IMG/VR virus record: IMGVR_UViG_3300017991_000001 | Coordinates: 1 to 64,000 of that record | Length of the DNA: 64,000 bases | Reading direction: 5' to 3' (one strand) | Shown: one piece after another, positions 1,374 through 35,308 of the stretch | Layout: the number at the start of each line of letters is the position of its first letter | Position numbering within the stretch: position 1 is the first letter of the stretch | Program-made: the position numbers and the translations under genes | The notes under the pieces: model-generated | The model's database searches: none | Seen by the model: only the letters and a program-made list of their open reading frames with translations | What the model was told of the DNA's origin: nothing

Positions 1374-3362
1374 ATGGACGAGAAAAGCGCGATGGAAGAA
1401 GTGGCCAGGTTGGCCGAGGCAAACGCGGTGCGCATGGAAAAAACGGCGCGTTCTCCGCGCATCCAAGTGATGGAGTTCCGGTTTCCGACGCCGGAGGACT
1501 GGGTGAAGGGCATGCGTTATTTCAAAGCCTATGGGGCCAATATGAAGTGGTTGTTCGCCCAGGCGTCGATGTGTCTCAACCTTGCCGGCATACCCGGGTT
1601 CACGCCCAAGAAGAACCTCAACGCAACGGTCGACATGGCCCTGGCCGACGCGTTCATGAAGTTGCTGGGCGGTGAGGTGGTGAACGGAGACGGAAACGGG
1701 GACGGTAAGAAACGCGGTGCGGCTCTGTATGCCTTGCGCAAGGCCTGGATGGACCGGCAGGACGAGCTAGAGAAGGCCGAGAACGTCGGCTTCCGTTTCC
1801 CTTCCTGCATATGGGACGAGGCACGGATCTTCGTGTGGGGCCACTTGAAAAGGAAGGACCCCCGCATGAAACGACGCCACTGCGACCTGTCGGCGGCGGG
1901 CGAGCGCAAGGACGTCAACTACAACACGGAACTGTCACGCATCGTACTGCAGGCGTACGAGTGCCAAACGACCAAACGTGTGAAGTTCGCTGAGGAAACC
2001 GATCCCGTCTCGGGCGAGAAGATGCTGGTAGCCTACCTGGGCATCGTGAAGGGCGTGAGCACGCGGGTCATCCTCGACGGTTGGTTCGAGCGGCTGGTCA
2101 GGAAGGAGGTGATCGAGAACGGCAAACGCGTGATGAAGGTCGTGCGCGAGCGGGACCGCTTTGAGATGGAGCCGCGAGCCAAGGGCGTCGTGGAGAATAT
2201 CCTCTCCGGTGAATACACGCTGCGTCGGGGCGAGTTCTACTTCCGCAAGCGCCGCAGCAAGGGCGGGCCCCGCAAGCTACGTCCCTTCCTGGATCTTTGT
2301 TACGACCCTCATGCCAAACGCACTGCCCGCCAGCTTAAGAAGGAGGAAGAGGAGGGCGAGACCACCAAGCGTGGCATGCGCTACGCGGCGCTGTTCTTCC
2401 ACAAGACGGACGGCGTGGGTAAGGACGAAGGGCTTGTTTATTTCCCCCACCTGTCAACCGACATCACGACAAGCAAGGAGAAGTTGGACAAGTACCGGTT
2501 CTATTCCCCGCCCGTGAACAACATGATGGGTGTACTGCACGATATCCGGGCGCGGCGCAACGCCGTCGTCCACCGCAAGCGTTCGGCGCTCGGGGTTCGC
2601 GAGTTCCGCACCGCCATCAAGAAGAAGGAGAAGTTGTACACGTTGCGGCGGGAGAAGTTCATCACGAAGAACATGAACATCATGGCGAACGACTTCGTGC
2701 GCTGCCTGCGAAGCTGGAACGTGGGCAACGTGATCATGCCGTGCGTGCCCAAGAACATCGAGGTGATGGGCGAGTCGTTCCCGTGGGCCGCGTTCGTCGA
2801 TATCATGCACACCAAGTGTGACGACGCGGACATCATCTTCCTGACCGGCGACGCGCACCTGGAAGCGCTGCAGGCTGCGGCCAACGAGGAGACCGCCGCC
2901 ATCAGGGCACGTGATGATCTGGAGGACGAGGAGAAGGAACGGGCCATCAAGGTCATCAAGGAACGCACCAAGGCCCACAAGGAAATGCTCTCCGGCAACA
3001 TCTCGGAGCGCGCGGACACGCTCATCGAAACCATTGAGAAGAAACTCGAGGAGCGGGGTATGCGCAAGGAGGAGGACGAGGAGTCCCTTCTCGAAGAGGA
3101 AAGCAAGAGCAAGAAGAAGAGGAAACCCCGCAAGCGCGTGAAGCCGGTGCGGAAGGTCATGGTCAAGACGAAGGACGATGACGGCAGGACTGTGAAAAAA
3201 GACGCCAGCAAACTCCGCACGAAGACGCGCAAGCGTGCGGACCCCAAGGCGAAGCACGAGAAGTGCTGGGCTCGCCACAGGGGAGGACAGCAGGGCGAAG
3301 TCGAAATGAAGGTTTTCGAGCAGGAAGAGGCTAAGAGGAAAGACAGGAAATCAGGAGGATAA
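1374..3362 (+). CDS. Nuclease-dead TnpB/Cas12f-like type V effector with C-terminal charged extension (662 aa)
   Basis: RBS AGGAGAGG before ATG 1374. Cas12f-like wedge segment ILSGEYTLRRGEFYF...FLDLCYD. The RuvC-I position reads MRYAALFFH (no D). Arg/Lys-rich bridge helix, then KNMNIMANDFVRCLRSWNVGNVIMPCV (RuvC-II, no E) and FPWAAFVDIMHTKCDDADIIF. No Zn finger or RuvC-III. Flanked by CRISPR arrays. Confidence 0.8.
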   Translation: MDEKSAMEEVARLAEANAVRMEKTARSPRIQVMEFRFPTPEDWVKGMRYFKAYGANMKWLFAQASMCLNLAGIPGFTPKKNLNATVDMALADAFMKLLGGEVVNGDGNGDGKKRGAALYALRKAWMDRQDELEKAENVGFRFPSCIWDEARIFVWGHLKRKDPRMKRRHCDLSAAGERKDVNYNTELSRIVLQAYECQTTKRVKFAEETDPVSGEKMLVAYLGIVKGVSTRVILDGWFERLVRKEVIENGKRVMKVVRERDRFEMEPRAKGVVENILSGEYTLRRGEFYFRKRRSKGGPRKLRPFLDLCYDPHAKRTARQLKKEEEEGETTKRGMRYAALFFHKTDGVGKDEGLVYFPHLSTDITTSKEKLDKYRFYSPPVNNMMGVLHDIRARRNAVVHRKRSALGVREFRTAIKKKEKLYTLRREKFITKNMNIMANDFVRCLRSWNVGNVIMPCVPKNIEVMGESFPWAAFVDIMHTKCDDADIIFLTGDAHLEALQAAANEETAAIRARDDLEDEEKERAIKVIKERTKAHKEMLSGNISERADTLIETIEKKLEERGMRKEEDEESLLEEESKSKKKRKPRKRVKPVRKVMVKTKDDDGRTVKKDASKLRTKTRKRADPKAKHEKCWARHRGGQQGEVEMKVFEQEEAKRKDRKSGG

Positions 3363-3364
3363 CT

Positions 3365-4207
3365 GTGAACAAAATCAGACCCGCTGTCGTTCCACCCCCC
3401 GCGATCATGTACACCCCGACGGGGGCGGGATTGCCGGACACGCAGTTTAAGAGCGTACTAGCAGCCGTAAGCTCTGCGATCTGCGGAAGCTACAAGCGAC
3501 ACAAGAAGTTGGTGAGAGACACACTACACAAGCATGGACCGCTATTGAGCTGCATGGACCAGGAGCAGCGAGACACGCTGATGGAGTCCATCGAAGGGCA
3601 GGGCGTTACGTACAGGGAAGTGGATCGCGTACTTTCCTGCTACAGCGTGGTGCCTCGTTACATAGGCTTGGCGCCGGCACTGGTGGACAACAGCGCGGTA
3701 AGCGTGTTGTGGTGGAACAACCTTCCAAAGCGCGTCAAGCAGGACGCGTTGGCTGACAAGCTGGTACGCGTGAAGCGTGCCAACAGTTGGGTGCAGAAGA
3801 AGTTTTCGGACCTCACCCCGAAAGACGTGCGGCAGGTGTTCGATGTGGGTGACGGAAGCAAAGGGTACCTGCCCGTACGCACGCAGCATACTGCGCCGCG
3901 TGCCCGCAAAAGCGTGTACATGCAACCCGCGGGGCCGGTGTCGGTCAACGAGGACGACCCCAACAAGTTCCTCATCGAGGTCACCAGCAAAGGCAAGCGA
4001 GAAGTGGTGGCCATGTCCGAGCACGAGATGAAGTACACGCTCGGACAGGCGCGCGTGCTGACGGGAAGGAACGCGGTGGATTGGGACGCGGTCGAGAAGG
4101 AGCTGCGCGATTTAATCGCGACGTGGCGCGCGTCCAGGTCCAAGCATAAGGCCGTGTTGGCGACCTGCGCCGACGAAGTCGAGAAAATATTGGACGGCAA
4201 CGTGTAG
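3365..4207 (+). CDS. Hypothetical protein, operonic partner of the dead Cas12f-like effector (280 aa)
   Basis: GTG start 2 nt after the effector stop, with AGGAGG RBS; no recognisable motif. Confidence 0.8.
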   Translation: MNKIRPAVVPPPAIMYTPTGAGLPDTQFKSVLAAVSSAICGSYKRHKKLVRDTLHKHGPLLSCMDQEQRDTLMESIEGQGVTYREVDRVLSCYSVVPRYIGLAPALVDNSAVSVLWWNNLPKRVKQDALADKLVRVKRANSWVQKKFSDLTPKDVRQVFDVGDGSKGYLPVRTQHTAPRARKSVYMQPAGPVSVNEDDPNKFLIEVTSKGKREVVAMSEHEMKYTLGQARVLTGRNAVDWDAVEKELRDLIATWRASRSKHKAVLATCADEVEKILDGNV

Positions 4208-4236
4208 CTGAACGAAGCAGCGGTACGATGTGCGGA

Positions 4237-4338
4237 AATTCGCGTCAGGCCTGCGAGATGTCCGCCGCGCACACTGAGTGCGTTGGCAGGGTAAGTGGCC
4301 GTGAAGGCGCTTCGGCGCCGGATACGTCTTCCCTACAC
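4237..4338 (+). ncRNA. tracrRNA-like scaffold copy 2 with anti-repeat for array 2
   Basis: Stems CCTGC/GCAGG, GCGCAC/GTGCGT and GGCGC-TTCG-GCGCC. Anti-repeat TCTTCCCTACAC (4327-4338) pairs with GTATAGGGAAGA of the repeat. Confidence 0.88.
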
Positions 4339-4384
4339 ATCCGCATGTCGTACCGCTACTCTGTTTCTAACCCTACATGTTGGT

Positions 4385-5474
4385 GTCGCACCCACGCGTA
4401 TAGGGAAGATTGGACCCAATTTTAGATACTCGCTGCAGCGCCGTCGTCGCACCCACGCGTATAGGGAAGATTGGAGAAACGATTTGACTAGGCATGCGGA
4501 GTCGTCGTCGCACCCACGCGTATAGGGAAGATTGGGCGCCCAGCGCGTCCGCCACGTGTTCGCGCTCGTCGCACCCACGCGTATAGGGAAGATTGGAAAG
4601 CTCCCTCGAAGGCGTCGCCCAACAGGCCGTCGCACCCACGCGTATAGGGAAGATTGGGCTTACGCCGGCAAGCTCGGCATTGAGGGCCTGTCGCACCCAC
4701 GCGTATAGGGAAGATTGGCAGCGGCTGGACCGGCGACTCGGTCTGCCCCAGTCGCACCCACGCGTATAGGGAAGATTGGCGTATCATGAACAGGTCGCAC
4801 CCACGCGTATAGGGAAGATTGGCGGCTCGAGGTGTTCGCTACAGGAGCGTCGCACCCGCGCGTATAGGGAAGATTGGGCACCCTTCCCGCGAGTCGCGTG
4901 CTGCAGCACGTCGCACCCACACGTATAGGGAAGATTGGTCCTCCCTCAGCGTTTCCTCCGCTTTGCAGTCGTTGCACCCACGCAGATAGGGAAGATTGGA
5001 AGGGCCAACCAAAGGCACTGCCGGTCGCCAAGTCGCACCCACGCGTATAGGGAAGATTGGTTTTGGAGGCGAGCAACGCGGCGACGGGCAGCGTCGCGCC
5101 CACGCGTATAGGGAAGATTGGCTAAAGGATGTTGATCTCCTGTCGCACCCACGCGTATAGGGAAGATTGGATCGATAGGCGTAATTCCGGTTCAGGTGCC
5201 GTGTCGCACCCACGCGTATAGGGAAGATTGGGCCCCCGATCCCGAAATCGAAAAGACGGACCCGTCGCACCCACGCGTATAGGGAAGATTGGGCTTCGAT
5301 GTTCTGTGTCGTAGCCTTGAGCGGGTCGCACCCGCGCGTATAGGGAAGATTGGGTCCTTTTCCCGGACCGCCACGGGTTCGGGCGGTCGCACCCACGCGT
5401 ATAAGGAAGATTGGCCGTCAAGAATCGCCCCAACACCGCGTGTGCGTCGCACCCACGCACACGAGGAGGGTTGG
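4385..5474 (+). CRISPR. CRISPR array 2: 19 repeats, 18 spacers
   Basis: Repeat GTCGCACCCACGCGTATAGGGAAGATTGG (29 nt). Spacers mostly 32 nt, also 14, 26, 20 and 31. A degenerate last repeat at 5446 indicates + orientation. Confidence 0.98.
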
Positions 5475-5540
5475 GTCCTGGGTTCGTTGTCGCGCTTACG
5501 TGCTGGGAATGCATACAGACTACAGCGGTGGACACATGTA

Positions 5541-5638
5541 AATTCGCGTCAGGCCTGCGAGATGTCCGCCGCGCACACTGAGTGCGTTGGCAGGGTAAGT
5601 GGCCGTGAAGGTGCTTGCACCGGATACGTCTTCCCTAC
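5541..5638 (+). ncRNA. tracrRNA-like scaffold copy 3 with anti-repeat for array 3
   Basis: Near-identical to copy 2, with a compensatory hairpin GGTGC-TT-GCACC; anti-repeat TCTTCCCTAC at 5629-5638. Confidence 0.88.
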
Positions 5639-5680
5639 CATGTGTCATGCCGTTGTTCTCTTTATGGTCCATATGTTGGT

Positions 5681-6133
5681 GTCGCGCCCACGCGTATGGG
5701 GAAGGTTGGGCTTATGCACGCATCAGGGAGATCAGCGCACCGTCGCGCCCACGCGTATGGGGAAGGTTGGTCGTGGAGACGAGCAAAGCCGCGACGGGCG
5801 CCGTCGCGCCCACGCGTATGGGGAAGGTTGGTACGCCGAGTGCCTCGGACAACTGCGGGACAAGCCGCGCCTGCGCTTATAGGGAAGATTGGCCATCCCG
5901 CCTGGGGACAAATGGAGATTGCGTCGCGCCCACGCGTGTAGGGAAGGCTGGAAACTGTATGACCGTGTGGCGATCGGCCATGTATCGCGCCTACGCGTGT
6001 AGGGAAAGCTGGCTGCATCTGGCGTCAGATTTCATGCTGCGTAGGTAGGACCCACGCGTGTAGGGAAGGCTGGGCGCAGCTCGCCGTTATCGGAGCACGA
6101 AACCTGTTGAACCCACCCGCGTAAGAAGGCTGG
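5681..6133 (+). CRISPR. CRISPR array 3: 8 repeats, 7 spacers
   Basis: GTCGCGCCCACGCGTATGGGGAAGGTTGG at 5681, 5742 and 5803; progressively degenerate copies at 5864, 5923, 5984, 6045 and 6106. Confidence 0.95.
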
Positions 6134-6166: not shown

Positions 6167-6272
6167 AATCGCGTCAGGCCTGCGAGATGTCCGCCGCGCG
6201 CACAGGCGCGTTGGCAGGATAAGTGGCCGTGAAGGCGCTTCGGCGCCGGATACGCTCTCCTCACACATACGT
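6167..6272 (+). ncRNA. tracrRNA-like scaffold copy 4 with anti-repeat for array 4
   Basis: Homologous scaffold. Anti-repeat GCTCTCCTCACACATACGT (6254-6272) pairs with ACGTA(C/T)G(C/T)GAGGAGGGC of the array-4 repeats. Confidence 0.88.
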
Positions 6273-6316
6273 CCGCATGTCGTGCTGCTGGTTAATCCAT
6301 ACCTCTGTATCTTGGC

Positions 6317-6772
6317 GTCAAACCTACGTACGCGAGGAGGACTGGCTAACGCGCCCAGAATGAGAGAATACCATGATGTCAAACCCATGTACGCGAGGAG
6401 GACTGGACGTTCACCGTCGCTATCTAAAGCGCCTTGCGGTCAAACTCACGTACGCGAGGAGGGTTGGGCTACCCTCAGCTACCGGCGGACGAGGACACGG
6501 TCAAACCCACATACGCGAGGAGAGCTGGGCCCACCTAGGACGGGCGGGCGGATTGCAACCGTCAAACCCACGTACGCGAGGAGGGCTGGTGATAAGCGAG
6601 GAGAACTAAGACCGAGGCAAGGTCAAACCCACGTATGCGAGGAGGGCTGGGCTGGCGTGGATGATGGTCGTTACCAGGATACGTCAAACCCACGTATGTG
6701 AGGAGGGCTGGCCTCGGCATGAACTGCTGCCTGCGTACTCGGCGTCGAACCCACGTACGCGAGGAGGGTTGG
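6317..6772 (+). CRISPR. CRISPR array 4: 8 repeats, 7 spacers of 32 nt
   Basis: Consensus GTCAAACCCACGTACGCGAGGAGGGCTGG at 6317, 6378, 6439, 6500, 6561, 6622, 6683 and 6744; exact 61-nt period. Confidence 0.95.
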
Positions 6773-6858: not shown

Positions 6859-7551
6859 CTATTCGGTCATGTAACCCGCGTCCAGCATCATCTCCCGATA
6901 CATCTTCAGCGTGTGAGCGATCTGCTCTTCGTCCAGCACGTCCTCCCAGGCGCCGGGCTCGCCCTTCGTCTCGGAGATGTGCTTGCCCCTGAGCTGGGTC
7001 TTCATGTCAGCGGTGTCCTCATGCAGCGAGTCGGTGAAGGCCTTCACCGTGACGGGGTCGACCTCGTGGGCGATGCGCTTCACGTCTTCCGGCATGGGAG
7101 GCAGCCCGAGGTACTCGCGGATGCGGTCCACCGCGGCGGGGAGGTCGTTGTAGACGTCCTCGTACTTGAGCATCAGGATGGCGGGGTGCTTCTTCATATA
7201 GAAGTACTCGGTGCTCATCTTCTTCGGGTAGCGCAGGCGCTTCTTGTAGGGCGTGCGTCCGAACTTGGGCAGGCGCTGCAGCGAGGCCATCACGTCCAGC
7301 GGGTTGCGGTAGGTGTAGATGATGAAGGCCCGGCGGACGATGTCGAAGGGCGGCTCGTAGTGGTGGACCTTGACAACCCGCCAGCGCGTGCTGTTGAGCT
7401 GCTGGCGAAGCTCCTCGTCGACCTGGGCGGCCGAGGTGCCGGCGTAGTCGTAGGGGTGGCCCCGGGCTTCCAGGAGCTTCTGGACCGTCATGTAGGACAG
7501 GGTTGATCCGGTTCGATACATTCCGTTGCAGATAACGAACTGCTTGTGCAC
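6859..7551 (-). CDS. Sulfotransferase (Sulfotransfer_1/3-like)
   Basis: 5'-PSB loop GMYRTGST, VVKVH, 3'-PB YRNPLDVMAS, LKYED; GTG start inferred. Confidence 0.85.
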   Translation of the reverse strand: MHKQFVICNGMYRTGSTLSYMTVQKLLEARGHPYDYAGTSAAQVDEELRQQLNSTRWRVVKVHHYEPPFDIVRRAFIIYTYRNPLDVMASLQRLPKFGRTPYKKRLRYPKKMSTEYFYMKKHPAILMLKYEDVYNDLPAAVDRIREYLGLPPMPEDVKRIAHEVDPVTVKAFTDSLHEDTADMKTQLRGKHISETKGEPGAWEDVLDEEQIAHTLKMYREMMLDAGYMTE

Positions 7552-8270
7552 GGTTCCACCTCTGGGATCTCGTACCCGGCGTGCTTCATCATCCGACCAC
7601 ACTGCGCCACGCATGCCCTTATGGTAGCGGCTGATAGGTGTTTACGCCAGGTGTCAGGTTTGCCCAAATCGTCGGAAATGTGGTGGTCGCGCACGTTTGT
7701 GATGTTCTTGATGGTGTCGTTGGGCATCGTGTCGGCGTGGGCCTTGACCACCTCAGCCGAGTGCCGGCGGGCGATCTCCCTGGCTTCGGGCAGCGTCACG
7801 TGCAGGTCCAGGAAGTTGGAGACCATGCAGACGACGCGGGGCACGTCCAGGATCATCTCCTCGTACTTGATCATCAGGCAGGGCTTCCAGTGCAGCTGGT
7901 CGAAGTAGTCATCCTCGTAACGGTCCCAGCCGTCGGGGATGTACTCGCCCCACTCGCCGGTCTGGGCCGTGCAGCGCTTCTGGGCGGAGGCGGCTATGTC
8001 CAGGGGGTTGCGGTAGGTGAACAGGAACCTGGCCTCCCTCATGACGTCGACCTGCCGGCCGCGCAGCACGTAGAAGTGCACCTTGGCCAGCATGGGAGGA
8101 GGCGTCGGGTAGGTGATCACGAAGCGGCCATAGCTGTCGCGGAGGCAGTACGGGGTGGACTCAATCAGCTCCACGTCGCCGAAGTTCAGCTCCAAGAGCT
8201 CACGTGCGATGTTGTAGACCAGCGTGGACCCCGAGCGGTACATCCCGTTGCAGACCACGAATCGACTCAC
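7488..8270 (-). CDS. Sulfotransferase, tandem paralogue
   Basis: GMYRSGST, LAKVH, YRNPLDIAAS, IKYEE; GTG start inferred. Confidence 0.85.
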   Translation of the reverse strand: MSRFVVCNGMYRSGSTLVYNIARELLELNFGDVELIESTPYCLRDSYGRFVITYPTPPPMLAKVHFYVLRGRQVDVMREARFLFTYRNPLDIAASAQKRCTAQTGEWGEYIPDGWDRYEDDYFDQLHWKPCLMIKYEEMILDVPRVVCMVSNFLDLHVTLPEAREIARRHSAEVVKAHADTMPNDTIKNITNVRDHHISDDLGKPDTWRKHLSAATIRACVAQCGRMMKHAGYEIPEVEPCTSSSLSATECIEPDQPCPT

Positions 8271-9955: not shown

Positions 9956-11779
9956 TCAGTAGGGGTCGCGGAACGCGTTGGGGGGTTCGGCCAGGTTGAG
10001 CTGCTCCTCGGTCAGCTTGATGCCCTGGACCTCGGACAGGTCGGGGTACCGCCGCGTGTAGTGCCAGATGGCGCAGGAGCCGTAGTTGAGCGCGTGGGCG
10101 AAGTCGTCCGGCATCTTGGGTCGCCGTATGATGGTGTAGACATCCTGGCGCCGGGCGACCTCCTTGCGCTCCTCGATGAGGTTGAGCAGGTCGGAGGTGA
10201 TGTTCTTGCTGGACTCGTACTCCGGGAGCAGGATCTTGCAGGCCTTGACACACACGGCCTGCAGGACCAGCGAGCGGGGTTTGTCCAGCTGGTAATAGCC
10301 CCTGAGCTCCCCTTCCGCCGGTTTCTTGTACACGACCACGTCCCGTGTGGGCAGGTACATGTACATGAAGGGCACGATCCGGTCGAGGGGCAGCCCGGCC
10401 TGTATCATCAGGGTTTCGCGCACGCCGCCGGCCCCGCCGTAGTCATGCGCGAAGAACATGCAGCCCGCTTCCCGATAGAGGTCCAGCAGGCGCCGGGCCT
10501 CCCAGTCGTGGGCCGCCGCCAGGGGGAAGCGCTCGCAGAAGTGGCATTCCAGCCCGCCGCCGATGGGGTTGAGACCGACAAGTGCAACGGACGTAAAGGA
10601 GGTGCCCTCCTCCTGACCGCCGCCGCCCCAGTCCACGCCCATGGCACGGATGGGGCAGCGGCGGAACTTGTCGATCATCCTGTCGAACTCGTTGGGCCCC
10701 AGGCGCGAGGCGCGCTTGATGTCGGTGACGGTGGTCAGGTTGACGCCCACGTCGGCCGACTCGCCGAGGACCTCGTTGAGGAACCTCGACTCGTTGTACC
10801 CGAACTTGCCGTCCCGCTTGGCGATCAGCTCGCCCCACTTCTCCTCGTCGCGGTAGTGCGAGGGGACGATGGGCTGCGGGACGTGGAAGCCCCAGAAGTC
10901 GGCGTGCTCGTCGGCGTCGGTGTGGTACCAGTGGCCGTTGGCGGCGTCGATGAGGTTCTTGCATTTGGCGCAGCACAGGCCCTTGCGCTCGATCATCTTC
11001 ATGAGGTCGGCCTGGAAGCAGGCCATGTTCCAGTAGCCGCAGTGGGTGCATTTGGTGACCCATTCGGCCTTGGAGGAGTCCTGCCACAGCGCCTCGATGG
11101 TGTTGTCGAGCGTCTTGGGCGTGCCGGAGTAGGAGGAGGCGCGGATCTTGGAATACGACATGCACTCCCGGATGATCGGGATGAAGTCGTAGTCCATGTC
11201 CTGGATCTCGTCGTGGTCGATGATGTCGCAGGCGATGCCGCGGATGCGGTCGCAGTCCAACAGCGCGAAGGAGAAGAACAGCATGCTCCCGTTCGCGAAG
11301 GACCGCTGCAGCACCGCGTTGGTGGCCGAGGTGTCGACCAGGAACCTGGAGATCGGGCTGTTCTTGATGAACGGCCGGACGTAGTTGTTGGAGAGGCGCC
11401 GGATCTGTTCGTATCGGGGGGTCACGAGCAGGGTCCGCAGGTAGGGGTGGCCGGCCGAACGCATGACGCAATTCGCCGAGAGCGTCGCGCTTTTGCCCAC
11501 CTGCCGCGCGCACTTGAGCAGCATGCGCCTGGGGATGCCCACCTTGAAGACCGGCTCCATGAAGAAGTGGTTCTCAAGGGTGTAGGGGCGCCCGTCCAGG
11601 GAGAGCAGGCCCAGCACGGGTACCAGCGTGTCGGGGTTGCGGTTACGCAGGATGTGCATCACCTGCATCACGTCGGCGAGCGAGACCTGCTCGCCGCTTT
11701 GGAAGGTATCGATGACGTTTTGTACGGACTCGGGCAGCTGGGTCTCTACCGACTCGGCAAGTGAGGAGGCTGTATCCAT
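9956..11779 (-). CDS. terL: Terminase large subunit (GpA-like)
   Basis: Walker A KCARQVGKS, Walker B DHDEIQD, GTP coupling motif, CxxC pairs, nuclease motifs MGVDWGG and PDDFAHALNY. Confidence 0.92.
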   Translation of the reverse strand: MDTASSLAESVETQLPESVQNVIDTFQSGEQVSLADVMQVMHILRNRNPDTLVPVLGLLSLDGRPYTLENHFFMEPVFKVGIPRRMLLKCARQVGKSATLSANCVMRSAGHPYLRTLLVTPRYEQIRRLSNNYVRPFIKNSPISRFLVDTSATNAVLQRSFANGSMLFFSFALLDCDRIRGIACDIIDHDEIQDMDYDFIPIIRECMSYSKIRASSYSGTPKTLDNTIEALWQDSSKAEWVTKCTHCGYWNMACFQADLMKMIERKGLCCAKCKNLIDAANGHWYHTDADEHADFWGFHVPQPIVPSHYRDEEKWGELIAKRDGKFGYNESRFLNEVLGESADVGVNLTTVTDIKRASRLGPNEFDRMIDKFRRCPIRAMGVDWGGGGQEEGTSFTSVALVGLNPIGGGLECHFCERFPLAAAHDWEARRLLDLYREAGCMFFAHDYGGAGGVRETLMIQAGLPLDRIVPFMYMYLPTRDVVVYKKPAEGELRGYYQLDKPRSLVLQAVCVKACKILLPEYESSKNITSDLLNLIEERKEVARRQDVYTIIRRPKMPDDFAHALNYGSCAIWHYTRRYPDLSEVQGIKLTEEQLNLAEPPNAFRDPY

Positions 11780-34535: not shown

Positions 34536-35116
34536 TCAACTTCGAGCGGTGCTACGACCGTTCGGACGAGGACCTCCAGCGGTTCCTGATCTTCTGCATC
34601 TGCGTTGCCGGCAAGAACGCCAAGACCGTCGACGCGAAGGTGTGCGAGTTTCTGGAGCCGTGCGAACACCGCAGGGAGACACCCTTCGAGTTCCTGCGGT
34701 ACCTGGTCAACATCGAGCGCTTGGACTTCGCGCTCGCGAAGGTCAAGATGGGGAAGTACAGGCTGCTCGAGCGGTCGTTTACGTACCTGGTCGAGAAAGA
34801 GTTGGACCTCCGGTCTTGTACGGTCGATCAGCTGGAAATGGTGCCCGGCATCGGTCCCAAGACCGCGAGGTTCTTTCTGCTGTACACGCGGGAGTACTTC
34901 CGGGGGGCGGTACTCGACACGCACGTGCTCCAGCACCTGGTGGCTTGCGGATGCAAGAAGGTGCCGAAGCAGACACCGCAGGACCCGAAGGTGTACCGGA
35001 AGTGGGAGGCGGTCGTGCTGGAGCTGGCCGCGGCCAACGGAATGGACCCGGCCGAGTACGACAACGAGATCTGGAAGAGCCGGAGCCCCTCAGCGGAGTT
35101 GGGGGTGTCTCCGTAG
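34532..35116 (+). CDS. HhH-GPD DNA glycosylase-like protein (OGG-like)
   Basis: LEMVPGIGPKTARFFL HhH motif with catalytic Lys; AVLDTHVL. Confidence 0.85.
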   Translation: MINFERCYDRSDEDLQRFLIFCICVAGKNAKTVDAKVCEFLEPCEHRRETPFEFLRYLVNIERLDFALAKVKMGKYRLLERSFTYLVEKELDLRSCTVDQLEMVPGIGPKTARFFLLYTREYFRGAVLDTHVLQHLVACGCKKVPKQTPQDPKVYRKWEAVVLELAAANGMDPAEYDNEIWKSRSPSAELGVSP

Positions 35117-35179
35117 CTCAACAGGCAGAGCGACGCTCTCTAAAAGCGGTGGTTCCGGGTTCGAGTCCCGGCGGAGGCA
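35107..35179 (+). tRNA. Amber suppressor tRNA (anticodon CUA), CCA not encoded
   Basis: Acceptor GTCTCCG/CGGAGGC plus A73; D-arm GCTC/GAGC; anticodon loop CTCTAAA; T-arm CCGGG-TTCGAGT-CCCGG. Confidence 0.9.
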
Positions 35180-35308
35180 TTTATCGTCGATTATTGGTGT
35201 AGTCAGTGCGGAAAGCCGATTTACAGCGGCAGTCGATTAGTCTGTGATGATTGCAAAGATGCCAGGTACTTCGGGGATAAAACTCCGCAGGGGGAAGATC
35301 TCCAAACC

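Follow-up and report, generated by a model that had tools for sequence, protein, structure and literature searches.

A truncated Cas12f-like effector with a charged tail and its conserved partner suggest a new two-protein RNA-guided DNA-binding system on a large phage

The stretch of DNA under study (further referred to as the window) comprises the first 64 kb of the 211,084-bp IMG/VR virus record IMGVR_UViG_3300017991_000001, which has direct terminal repeats, is rated complete and has a GC content of ca. 0.61. Near its left end lies a CRISPR locus that contains two protein genes only, i.e., an effector gene (1374–3362, + strand; 662 aa) and a partner gene (3365–4207, + strand; 280 aa). The effector very probably lacks nuclease activity and extends beyond its fold as a long charged tail, and this charged-tailed effector together with its conserved partner suggests a new two-protein RNA-guided DNA-binding system. 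More specifically, we consider it about 50% probable that the locus encodes a type V-like system, carried by the phage and nuclease-dead, which binds DNA without cutting it and is expressed from a two-gene operon with an obligate, co-evolving partner. No description of this effector/partner family was found in the literature searched.

An exhaustive HMMER search with effector residues 1–500 against 1.84 billion cluster representatives returned three proteins, i.e., the query itself (lineage A), P0008 (lineage B; 575 aa, 29% identity, E-value of 3e-18), which is encoded on phage contigs of ca. 163–198 kb, and P0009 (lineage C; 542 aa, 28% identity, E-value of 9e-9), which is encoded on two short contigs. 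Since a family of three clusters in such a collection is extremely rare, profile-based Cas mining would miss it. In both other lineages a homologue of the partner occupies the same position, i.e., P0010 in lineage B (223 aa) and P0012 in lineage C (239 aa), the genes of which overlap the end of the effector gene by 14 and 28 nt, respectively. The partners of lineages A and B match with an E-value of 6e-16 (25% identity over 223 residues) and those of lineages A and C with an E-value of 1e-6, while a profile search of 5.8 billion clusters retrieved exactly the three lineage partners and nothing more. Word-based searches with the effector and the partner returned their own clusters only, tblastn against 50,697 phage records yielded no relatives, and scanning IMG/VR, JGI metagenomes and GTDB genomes (185,579 species genomes) for sequence patterns recovered lineages A and B again but no new lineage of either protein. 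Effector and partner co-occurred in three out of three lineages, exclusively in both directions, and dead homologues without the partner, which would have spoken against the functional pairing proposed in an initial annotation of this DNA, were looked for but not encountered.

The effector fold, its end and its charged tail

The effector is a very divergent protein of the Cas12f/TnpB fold, and four lines of evidence that are only partly independent (ESM Atlas, a family profile, Foldseek and an NCBIfam match of lineage C) place it there. Its core comprises residues 1–492 (1374–2849, + strand), ending at the motif DADIIFLTG. In the ESM Atlas model of the exact effector, the structural neighbours over residues 13–500 were all TnpB/Cas12f families or unnamed proteins (template modelling scores of 0.44–0.60). 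When the profile of the three-member effector family was compared with PDB sequences, five AsCas12f chains ranked first (E-values of 0.008–0.03), with the alignment covering the WED strands into RuvC-I. Likewise, most top Foldseek matches of the effector AlphaFold2 (AF2) model among 350,542 PDB chains were Cas12 proteins (including Cas12o, AsCas12f, Cas12h, Cas12X, Cas12k, Cas12m and dCas12f), and the lineage C effector matched the NCBIfam family guided_TnpB (E-value of 0.022; profile positions 218–338 of 389). The architecture expected of a type V effector, i.e., WED, REC and RuvC parts with an RNase H-like RuvC core, is hence recognisable in the window protein. Nevertheless, the AF2 model was built from a three-row alignment and is poor (predicted local distance difference test score, pLDDT, of 43), and since its N-terminal two thirds in particular are poor, the WED and REC assignment rests mainly on the Atlas model. 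The profile of the C-terminal core alone retrieved only noise from the PDB sequences, and the effector had no match at a usable level to curated families in Pfam, NCBIfam, PADLOC or PHROGs. The matches of the lineage C effector to PADLOC retron reverse transcriptase models (residues 389–511, E-values of ca. 1e-3) span the end of the core and the charged tail, and were taken to be compositional.

The end of the fold was located by VIA-align, in which the 16 best-ranking Cas12f/TnpB chains superposed with their RuvC part on residues 374–492 (Z-scores of 6.9–9.1, with a root-mean-square deviation of 2.5–3.1 Å for the best matches), the first unrelated row appearing at a Z-score of 6.2. These matches included CnCas12f1 (Z-score of 9.1, 2.5 Å over 115 residues, chain positions 294–429), SpCas12f1 (Z-score of 9.1, chain positions 231–367), AsCas12f (Z-score of 8.5, chain positions 228–363), the sigmaE-associated dCas12f (9n9c; Z-score of 8.3, chain positions 231–365, matched by effector residues 376–492) and ISDra2 TnpB (Z-score of 7.3, chain positions 193–321). 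In all Cas12f/TnpB rows but one, the matched range of the model ended at residue 492 (nt 2849), and in the remaining row it ended at residue 491. If the catalytic residues are, as we take them to be, D225, E324 and D401 in AsCas12f and D191, E278 and D361 in ISDra2 TnpB, then the matched segment presumably begins just past RuvC-I and stops before the zinc ribbon and RuvC-III.

The sequences of the family agree with such a truncation. None of the three effectors contains a CxxC or CxxH zinc-ribbon motif, and the Pfam TNB domain (PF07282) had no match in the effector or anywhere else in the 211-kb genome. Moreover, the three-lineage alignment revealed no invariant acidic residue in the strands expected for RuvC-I and RuvC-II, the RuvC-I position being deleted in lineages B and C and occupied by an acidic loop in the window effector, although this mapping of RuvC-I and RuvC-II rests on weak alignments. 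A catalytic D-E-D triad was therefore not found in the effector, which lacks the RuvC-III segment since its chain departs from the fold at residue 492. Because of the fold end at this residue, the missing zinc-ribbon motifs and TNB domain, and the lack of invariant acids, we conclude that the C-terminal zinc-finger/RuvC-III module is gone, that the charged tail starts in its place, and that the effector is very probably nuclease-dead. This agrees with the initial annotation, in which a charged tail had been proposed to replace the RuvC-III/zinc-finger region directly after DADIIFLTG.

The tail that follows this motif (residues 484–492) counts 170 aa (2850–3359), 52% of which are charged, and consists of three parts on the + strand. 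Residues 493–577 (2850–3104) are acidic and predicted to be helical, with a net charge of –12 (27 D+E vs. 15 K+R); the AF2 helices at 492–541 and 545–577 are of low confidence (pLDDT of 50–69), yet are among the better parts of the poor model. Residues 578–627 (3105–3254) are Lys/Arg-rich with a net charge of +20 (25 K+R vs. 5 D+E) and are predicted to be mostly without regular structure, apart from two short strands at 596–610. The order of an acidic helical stretch followed by a Lys/Arg-rich one is thus as initially described. Finally, residues 628–662 together with the stop codon (3255–3362) are of mixed charge, and this part of the gene contains the sequence AGGAGG at 3353–3358, which is the ribosome-binding site of the partner gene. 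The effectors of lineages B and C leave the conserved core at the same alignment column and carry charged tails of 80 and 83 residues, respectively. What is conserved in these tails is the kind of appendage and not its sequence.

Besides their tails, P0008 and P0009 have Lys/Arg-rich N-terminal extensions (residues 1–40, L005:10001–10120, and residues 1–25, L011:1529–1603, respectively) that are absent from the window effector, which in turn holds the longest basic C-terminal stretch of the family. Within this effector family, the basic appendage seems to move between the ends of the protein.

The partner gene and its product

The effector gene starts at an ATG preceded by GGAGAGG and stops at a TAA (3360–3362), after which the partner gene starts at a GTG (3365) only 2 nt past the stop codon and 6 nt behind the AGGAGG sequence. 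This GTG start is supported by the N-terminal similarity of the partner to both of its homologues, and no terminator-like site was found at the effector/partner junction or beyond. The tight spacing, as well as the status of the partner as the only other gene inside the CRISPR locus, had been pointed out before; the latter is borne out by the independent JGI gene calls, in which effector and partner are the only entries from nt 794 to nt 6859. The GC content at third codon positions is 0.84 for the effector core, 0.79 for the tail and 0.78 for the partner, and this strong bias indicates that all three are real coding sequence translated in the stated frames. In addition, three JGI samples as well as assemblies from ENA and Logan contain the identical two proteins, and this recurrence in several independent assemblies shows that tail and gene junction did not arise from misassembly.

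The partner belongs to no known family. It is basic in all three lineages (isoelectric points of 9.5–9.7, with 9.5 for the window protein), and its N-terminus is rich in Pro and includes the conserved motif G-[LM]-P-x-x-x-F. According to its AF2 model, which was built from the single sequence and is poor (pLDDT of 44), the N-terminal half is helical and four strands are located at residues 169–218, and the same low-confidence model gives the window protein alone a C-terminal helical extension. No usable match to the partner was obtained in Pfam, NCBIfam, PADLOC, PHROGs or PDB sequences, and its model retrieved nothing above the stated noise in PDB Foldseek, wide VIA-align or ESM Atlas comparisons. 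In agreement with the earlier remark that the partner bears no sigma-factor or transposase signature, the three partners matched no sigma-factor family at E-values up to 1 in Pfam or NCBIfam, and neither effector nor partner matched transposition families in the family scans.

Invariant polar residues across the partners are few (Q68, D131, S148, Y185 and E221), so that the protein does not look like it holds an enzyme active site. Matches to a holin (E-value of 0.034) and to RbsR (E-value of 0.16) were set aside as noise-level, and the idea that the partner is a duplicated or split-off piece of the effector was rejected, as hhalign gave the partner and effector profiles a probability of 0.15%. 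Prediction of the complex of full-length effector and partner, made with three-row alignments, scored 0.00 in both runs and speaks neither for nor against binding.

Arrays and putative tracrRNAs

The operon is flanked by four CRISPR arrays, all on the + strand, that together hold 37 repeats of 29 nt and 33 spacers of mostly 32 nt with a period of 61 nt, while the rest of the genome contains no further repeats. In array 1 (1103–1253), 2 spacers of 32 nt separate 3 repeats of 29 nt. Downstream of the partner gene, array 2 (4385–5474) comprises 19 repeats and includes shortened spacers at 4780–4793 (14 nt), 4823–4848 (26 nt) and 5122–5141 (20 nt), array 3 (5681–6073) comprises 7 repeats of which the distal ones are degenerate, and array 4 (6317–6772) comprises 8 repeats of a variant repeat. 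Lineage B has the same array layout, and lineage C has an upstream array, the repeats being 29 nt long in both.

Ahead of each array lies a tracrRNA-like (trans-activating CRISPR RNA-like) structured element of ca. 110 nt on the + strand, located at 957–1072 (element 1), 4234–4346 (element 2), 5538–5640 (element 3) and 6167–6280 (element 4). The four aligned stretches have a mean column identity of 78%, in an alignment that also took in the upstream flank and the first repeat. Their consensus folds into a long irregular stem and a hairpin, and two of its pairs are compensated across the four copies; a single copy folds no better than shuffles in this GC-rich sequence (z-score of –0.5), and Rfam gave no match to the elements. 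Each element carries, in its 3′ part, a stretch that can pair with the 3′ half of the repeat and that co-varies with the repeat of its own array, as in element 1, where the anti-repeat at the 3′ end forms a 10-bp helix with the repeat of array 1. Pairing was scored by counting contiguous helices, since RNAduplex on whole elements was not discriminating in GC-rich sequence. With wobble pairs allowed, the longest helices of elements 1 to 4 with their own arrays were 10, 10, 10 and 9 bp, compared to at most 8 bp with other arrays, except that elements 2 and 3 share one anti-repeat and score 10 with each other's arrays. In lineage B, the first element copy reaches 10 bp and the second just 6 bp.

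Judged from their sequences, these elements look like one tracrRNA per array, and the predicted arrangement, in which the guide lies 3′ of the repeat, is what one expects of a tracrRNA:crRNA (CRISPR RNA) pair in systems of the Cas12f type. The locus therefore has the layout of a type V locus, i.e., an effector adjacent to arrays and accompanied by predicted tracr-like elements. No match to cas1 or cas2, the adaptation genes that many but not all type V loci carry, was found in the complete phage genome. All 32 spacers counted were identical in three JGI samples, and the arrays of the window phage are static or slowly decaying.

The repeat of the upstream array of lineage B (L005:9302–9891) has a CCCC...GGGGATGG core, which we take to be typical of type I-E arrays and which also occurs in arrays of metagenome-assembled genomes of Vicinamibacterales and of several actinomycetes (loci L030–L046). 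The phage arrays may descend from, or still depend on, a type I-E adaptation module of the host. As a side observation, one lineage B record (G001; IMGVR_UViG_3300028840_008153) is classed as a provirus by IMG/VR (163 kb, 78% complete), and the difference between its downstream array (L012:8593–8692) and the L005 copy is the duplication of one repeat-spacer unit, indicating that the downstream array of lineage B does change between samples.

Possible function, alternatives and known systems

If the locus indeed encodes a non-cutting type V-like system, the complex of effector and guide would bind DNA targets without cleaving them and would act by occupancy, thereby silencing transcription or replication of a target in the host or in a rival phage, with the four arrays and their tracr-like elements supplying the crRNA guides. 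We infer such binding without cleavage because the active-site elements have been lost and because this behaviour is documented for the truncated TldR and dCas12f proteins discussed below. More tentatively, the basic part of the tail might add non-specific nucleic-acid affinity and so replace the lost target-nucleic-acid-binding domain, the acidic helices might serve as a protein-protein or dimerisation surface, and the partner, presumably made in step with the effector, could be an obligate stoichiometric subunit or the delivered output. The overall interpretation given initially is partly supported, namely for the truncated effector, its charged tail and the conserved, coupled partner, while an output module formed by tail and partner would be a conjecture. 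A bolder version, which we regard as doubtful at well under even odds, sees in the partner (220–280 aa) an output subunit of a new kind and of a so far unseen fold. The dead, truncated Cas12f-like protein would bring it to the sites that the spacers define, and the acidic tail helices might be where it docks. What it does there would not be cleavage but, for instance, controlling transcription, replication or DNA packaging in the host or in a rival phage, and with its two proteins the locus would then represent a new type V subtype found in large phages only.

Several observations weigh against a functional RNA-guided complex of effector and partner. The system could be in decay, since its arrays did not differ between three samples and a few spacers are shortened. 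The spacers had no target in the genome of the phage itself or in INPHARED, two leader-proximal spacers had none in IMG/VR, and the spacers of lineage A had no targets in the lineage B phage, nor those of lineage B in phage A. The sequencing runs that contain the locus, which come from sediment and seawater studies, are DNA only, with no RNA run among them. Binding of effector and partner to each other would be deduced from their pairing rather than directly observed, and because the phages of lineages A and B are related (their terminases are 58% identical), the three-out-of-three co-occurrence amounts to less than three independent events. Moreover, the tails of lineages A and B show no significant sequence similarity (E-value of 1.4) and agree in composition only, while the longest basic stretch of the lineage B and C effectors is N-terminal, so that the tail may be a generic basic appendage instead of a specific module. 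Finally, the residue-level mapping of RuvC-I and RuvC-II is weak because both AF2 models are poor (pLDDT of 43–44).

Some of these points, i.e., the relatedness of phages A and B, the tails that cannot be aligned and the signs of decay in the arrays, would fit an inherited synteny, in which the partner is an unrelated phage gene and the tail a low-complexity extension that evolves fast and has no specific role. We nevertheless deem this very improbable, because effector and partner alone match between the first 16 kb of lineage A and the 21.7-kb locus of lineage B, and because their coupling survived the divergence of both proteins to ca. 19–29% identity, an overlap or a 2-nt gap being kept in all three lineages. 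Furthermore, the third-position GC bias marks tail and partner as genuine coding sequence. Hardly more probable is that the system is not dead at all, and that the partner supplies a catalytic or effector activity in trans (e.g., as a nuclease or DNA-modifying enzyme recruited to the target) to form a split active effector. The strict pairing, the loss of active-site elements from the effector itself and the orphan status of the partner, which could be an unrecognised enzyme, would suit such a division of labour, but no catalytic motif, family or fold match was found for the partner, its invariant polar residues are very few, and the hhalign comparison made its profile unlike the effector family or the RuvC segment.

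It is unlikely, in our estimate, that the partner is a DNA-binding regulator of the operon or arrays that stands outside the RNA-guided complex, comparable to the helix-turn-helix proteins encoded beside CRISPR or anti-CRISPR genes. Residues ca. 38–106 of the poor model do resemble three-helix homeodomain-like bundles (Z-scores of 5.0–5.4), a G-x-G-[VI]-[ST]-Y turn-helix motif occurs in lineages A and B (partner residues 78–83, with G78 invariant), the lineage B partner weakly matches a region near the N-terminus of a LacI-type repressor (E-value of 0.16), and the partner is basic (isoelectric point of 9.5). However, all those scores lie within the stated noise range of the tools, no Pfam helix-turn-helix model matches any of the three partners at E-values up to 1, and overlapping stop and start codons that are kept down to ca. 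20–25% identity fit a stoichiometric subunit better. Since the locus lacks a Cas6-type enzyme, the partner might also be a guide-RNA biogenesis or chaperone factor that anneals or processes the tracr-like RNA and pre-crRNA of the four arrays, an option to which we assign a slightly smaller chance than to the regulator. The RNA load of the locus is unusually high (four tracr-like elements and 37 repeats), and partner residues ca. 145–235 weakly resemble Sm/Hfq barrels (Z-scores of 4.8–5.2) and Tudor/SH3-like barrels (Foldseek probability of up to 0.8, but with an E-value of 0.17). These barrel matches are at noise level in a model with a pLDDT of 44, the partner has no nuclease-like set of invariant residues, and other tracrRNA-using type V systems are usually described to rely on host RNase III or on the effector itself.

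The reading of a non-cutting, RNA-guided system is best compared with nuclease-dead relatives of TnpB and Cas12. Cas12k (type V-K) resembles it in being naturally inactive, in using a tracrRNA and in passing its signal to partners, and Cas12k structures were matched at Z-scores of 5.9–6.2. The window locus itself, with its two protein genes, differs in lacking the Tn7-like genes tnsB, tnsC and tniQ, and its partner has no transposase or TniQ signature. Cas12m (type V-M) keeps its C-terminal domain and, to our knowledge, needs no tracrRNA and no partner. Cas12m is described as a compact effector that retains a non-canonical RuvC triad and protects by binding and transcriptional silencing instead of double-stranded DNA cleavage (PMC10442227). 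On that description, it shares with the window protein the compact type V build and the presumed absence of cutting, with protection in its own case resulting from binding, whereas the window effector has no retained RuvC triad and matches Cas12m structures more weakly (Z-scores of 5.7–5.9).

Closer parallels are found among the truncated proteins. TldR proteins, some of which are phage-encoded, are RNA-guided DNA binders with a C-terminal truncation of the RuvC/zinc-finger region, and their binding and repression are RNA-guided (doi 10.1101/2023.11.30.569447). The window effector is likewise truncated at its C-terminus, where the RuvC/zinc-finger end is missing, but is larger (662 aa) and has no match to TnpB models at curated thresholds. 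Moreover, TldR uses a single adjacent omega-RNA-like guide and no CRISPR array, in contrast to the four spacer arrays of the window locus, and neither such an obligate partner nor a charged tail has been described for it. In the dCas12f-sigmaE system of Bacteroidetes, a C-terminal truncation removes part of the RuvC site and a sigmaE partner is encoded in the same operon (PMC13472631). A truncated Cas12f fold in a tight operon with one partner gene is common to both systems, the partner being the output in the Bacteroidetes case. Differently from that system, where an extracytoplasmic function sigma factor with a C-terminal extension would be expected, the window partner is not a sigma factor and has no Sigma70 match; the window system resides on a 211-kb phage and not on a Bacteroidetes chromosome, its locus has four arrays each with a tracr-like element, its effector has a 170-aa charged tail, and there is no detectable sequence relationship beyond the fold. 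By analogy, the window system would act like TldR and dCas12f-sigmaE, while it lacks defining features of TldR, dCas12f-sigmaE, Cas12k and Cas12m alike.

Nuclease-dead, truncated relatives of TnpB and Cas12f have recently been shown to be natural RNA-guided transcription factors, and the window locus adds a third design, which is phage-encoded and combines 33 spacers and four tracr-like/array modules with a partner that has no recognisable relative elsewhere in 15 billion proteins. Should the partner be the output, the role of this orphan family could be new, and the locus would represent a new way in which RNA-guided binding is translated to biological effect, with a compact tool as a possible use. 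Should it only stabilise the effector, the locus would still show how a phage makes use of a non-cutting CRISPR effector.

As to its surroundings, the CRISPR locus is bounded on the left by a terminator-like hairpin after the upstream gene (817–838, + strand; a 9-bp stem, 8 pairs of which are G-C, and a T run after it), and extends up to sulfotransferase-like genes that start at 6859. Two such genes are adjacent to each other on the – strand (6859–8270; Pfam Sulfotransfer_1/3 according to precomputed calls), and are followed by a 268-aa gene without a Pfam match and by a GpA-type terminase gene (9956–11779). Further along, ARAGORN detected the sole tRNA of the window at 35106–35180, which has the anticodon CTA, is labelled tRNA-Pyl and would be of the amber-suppressor type.

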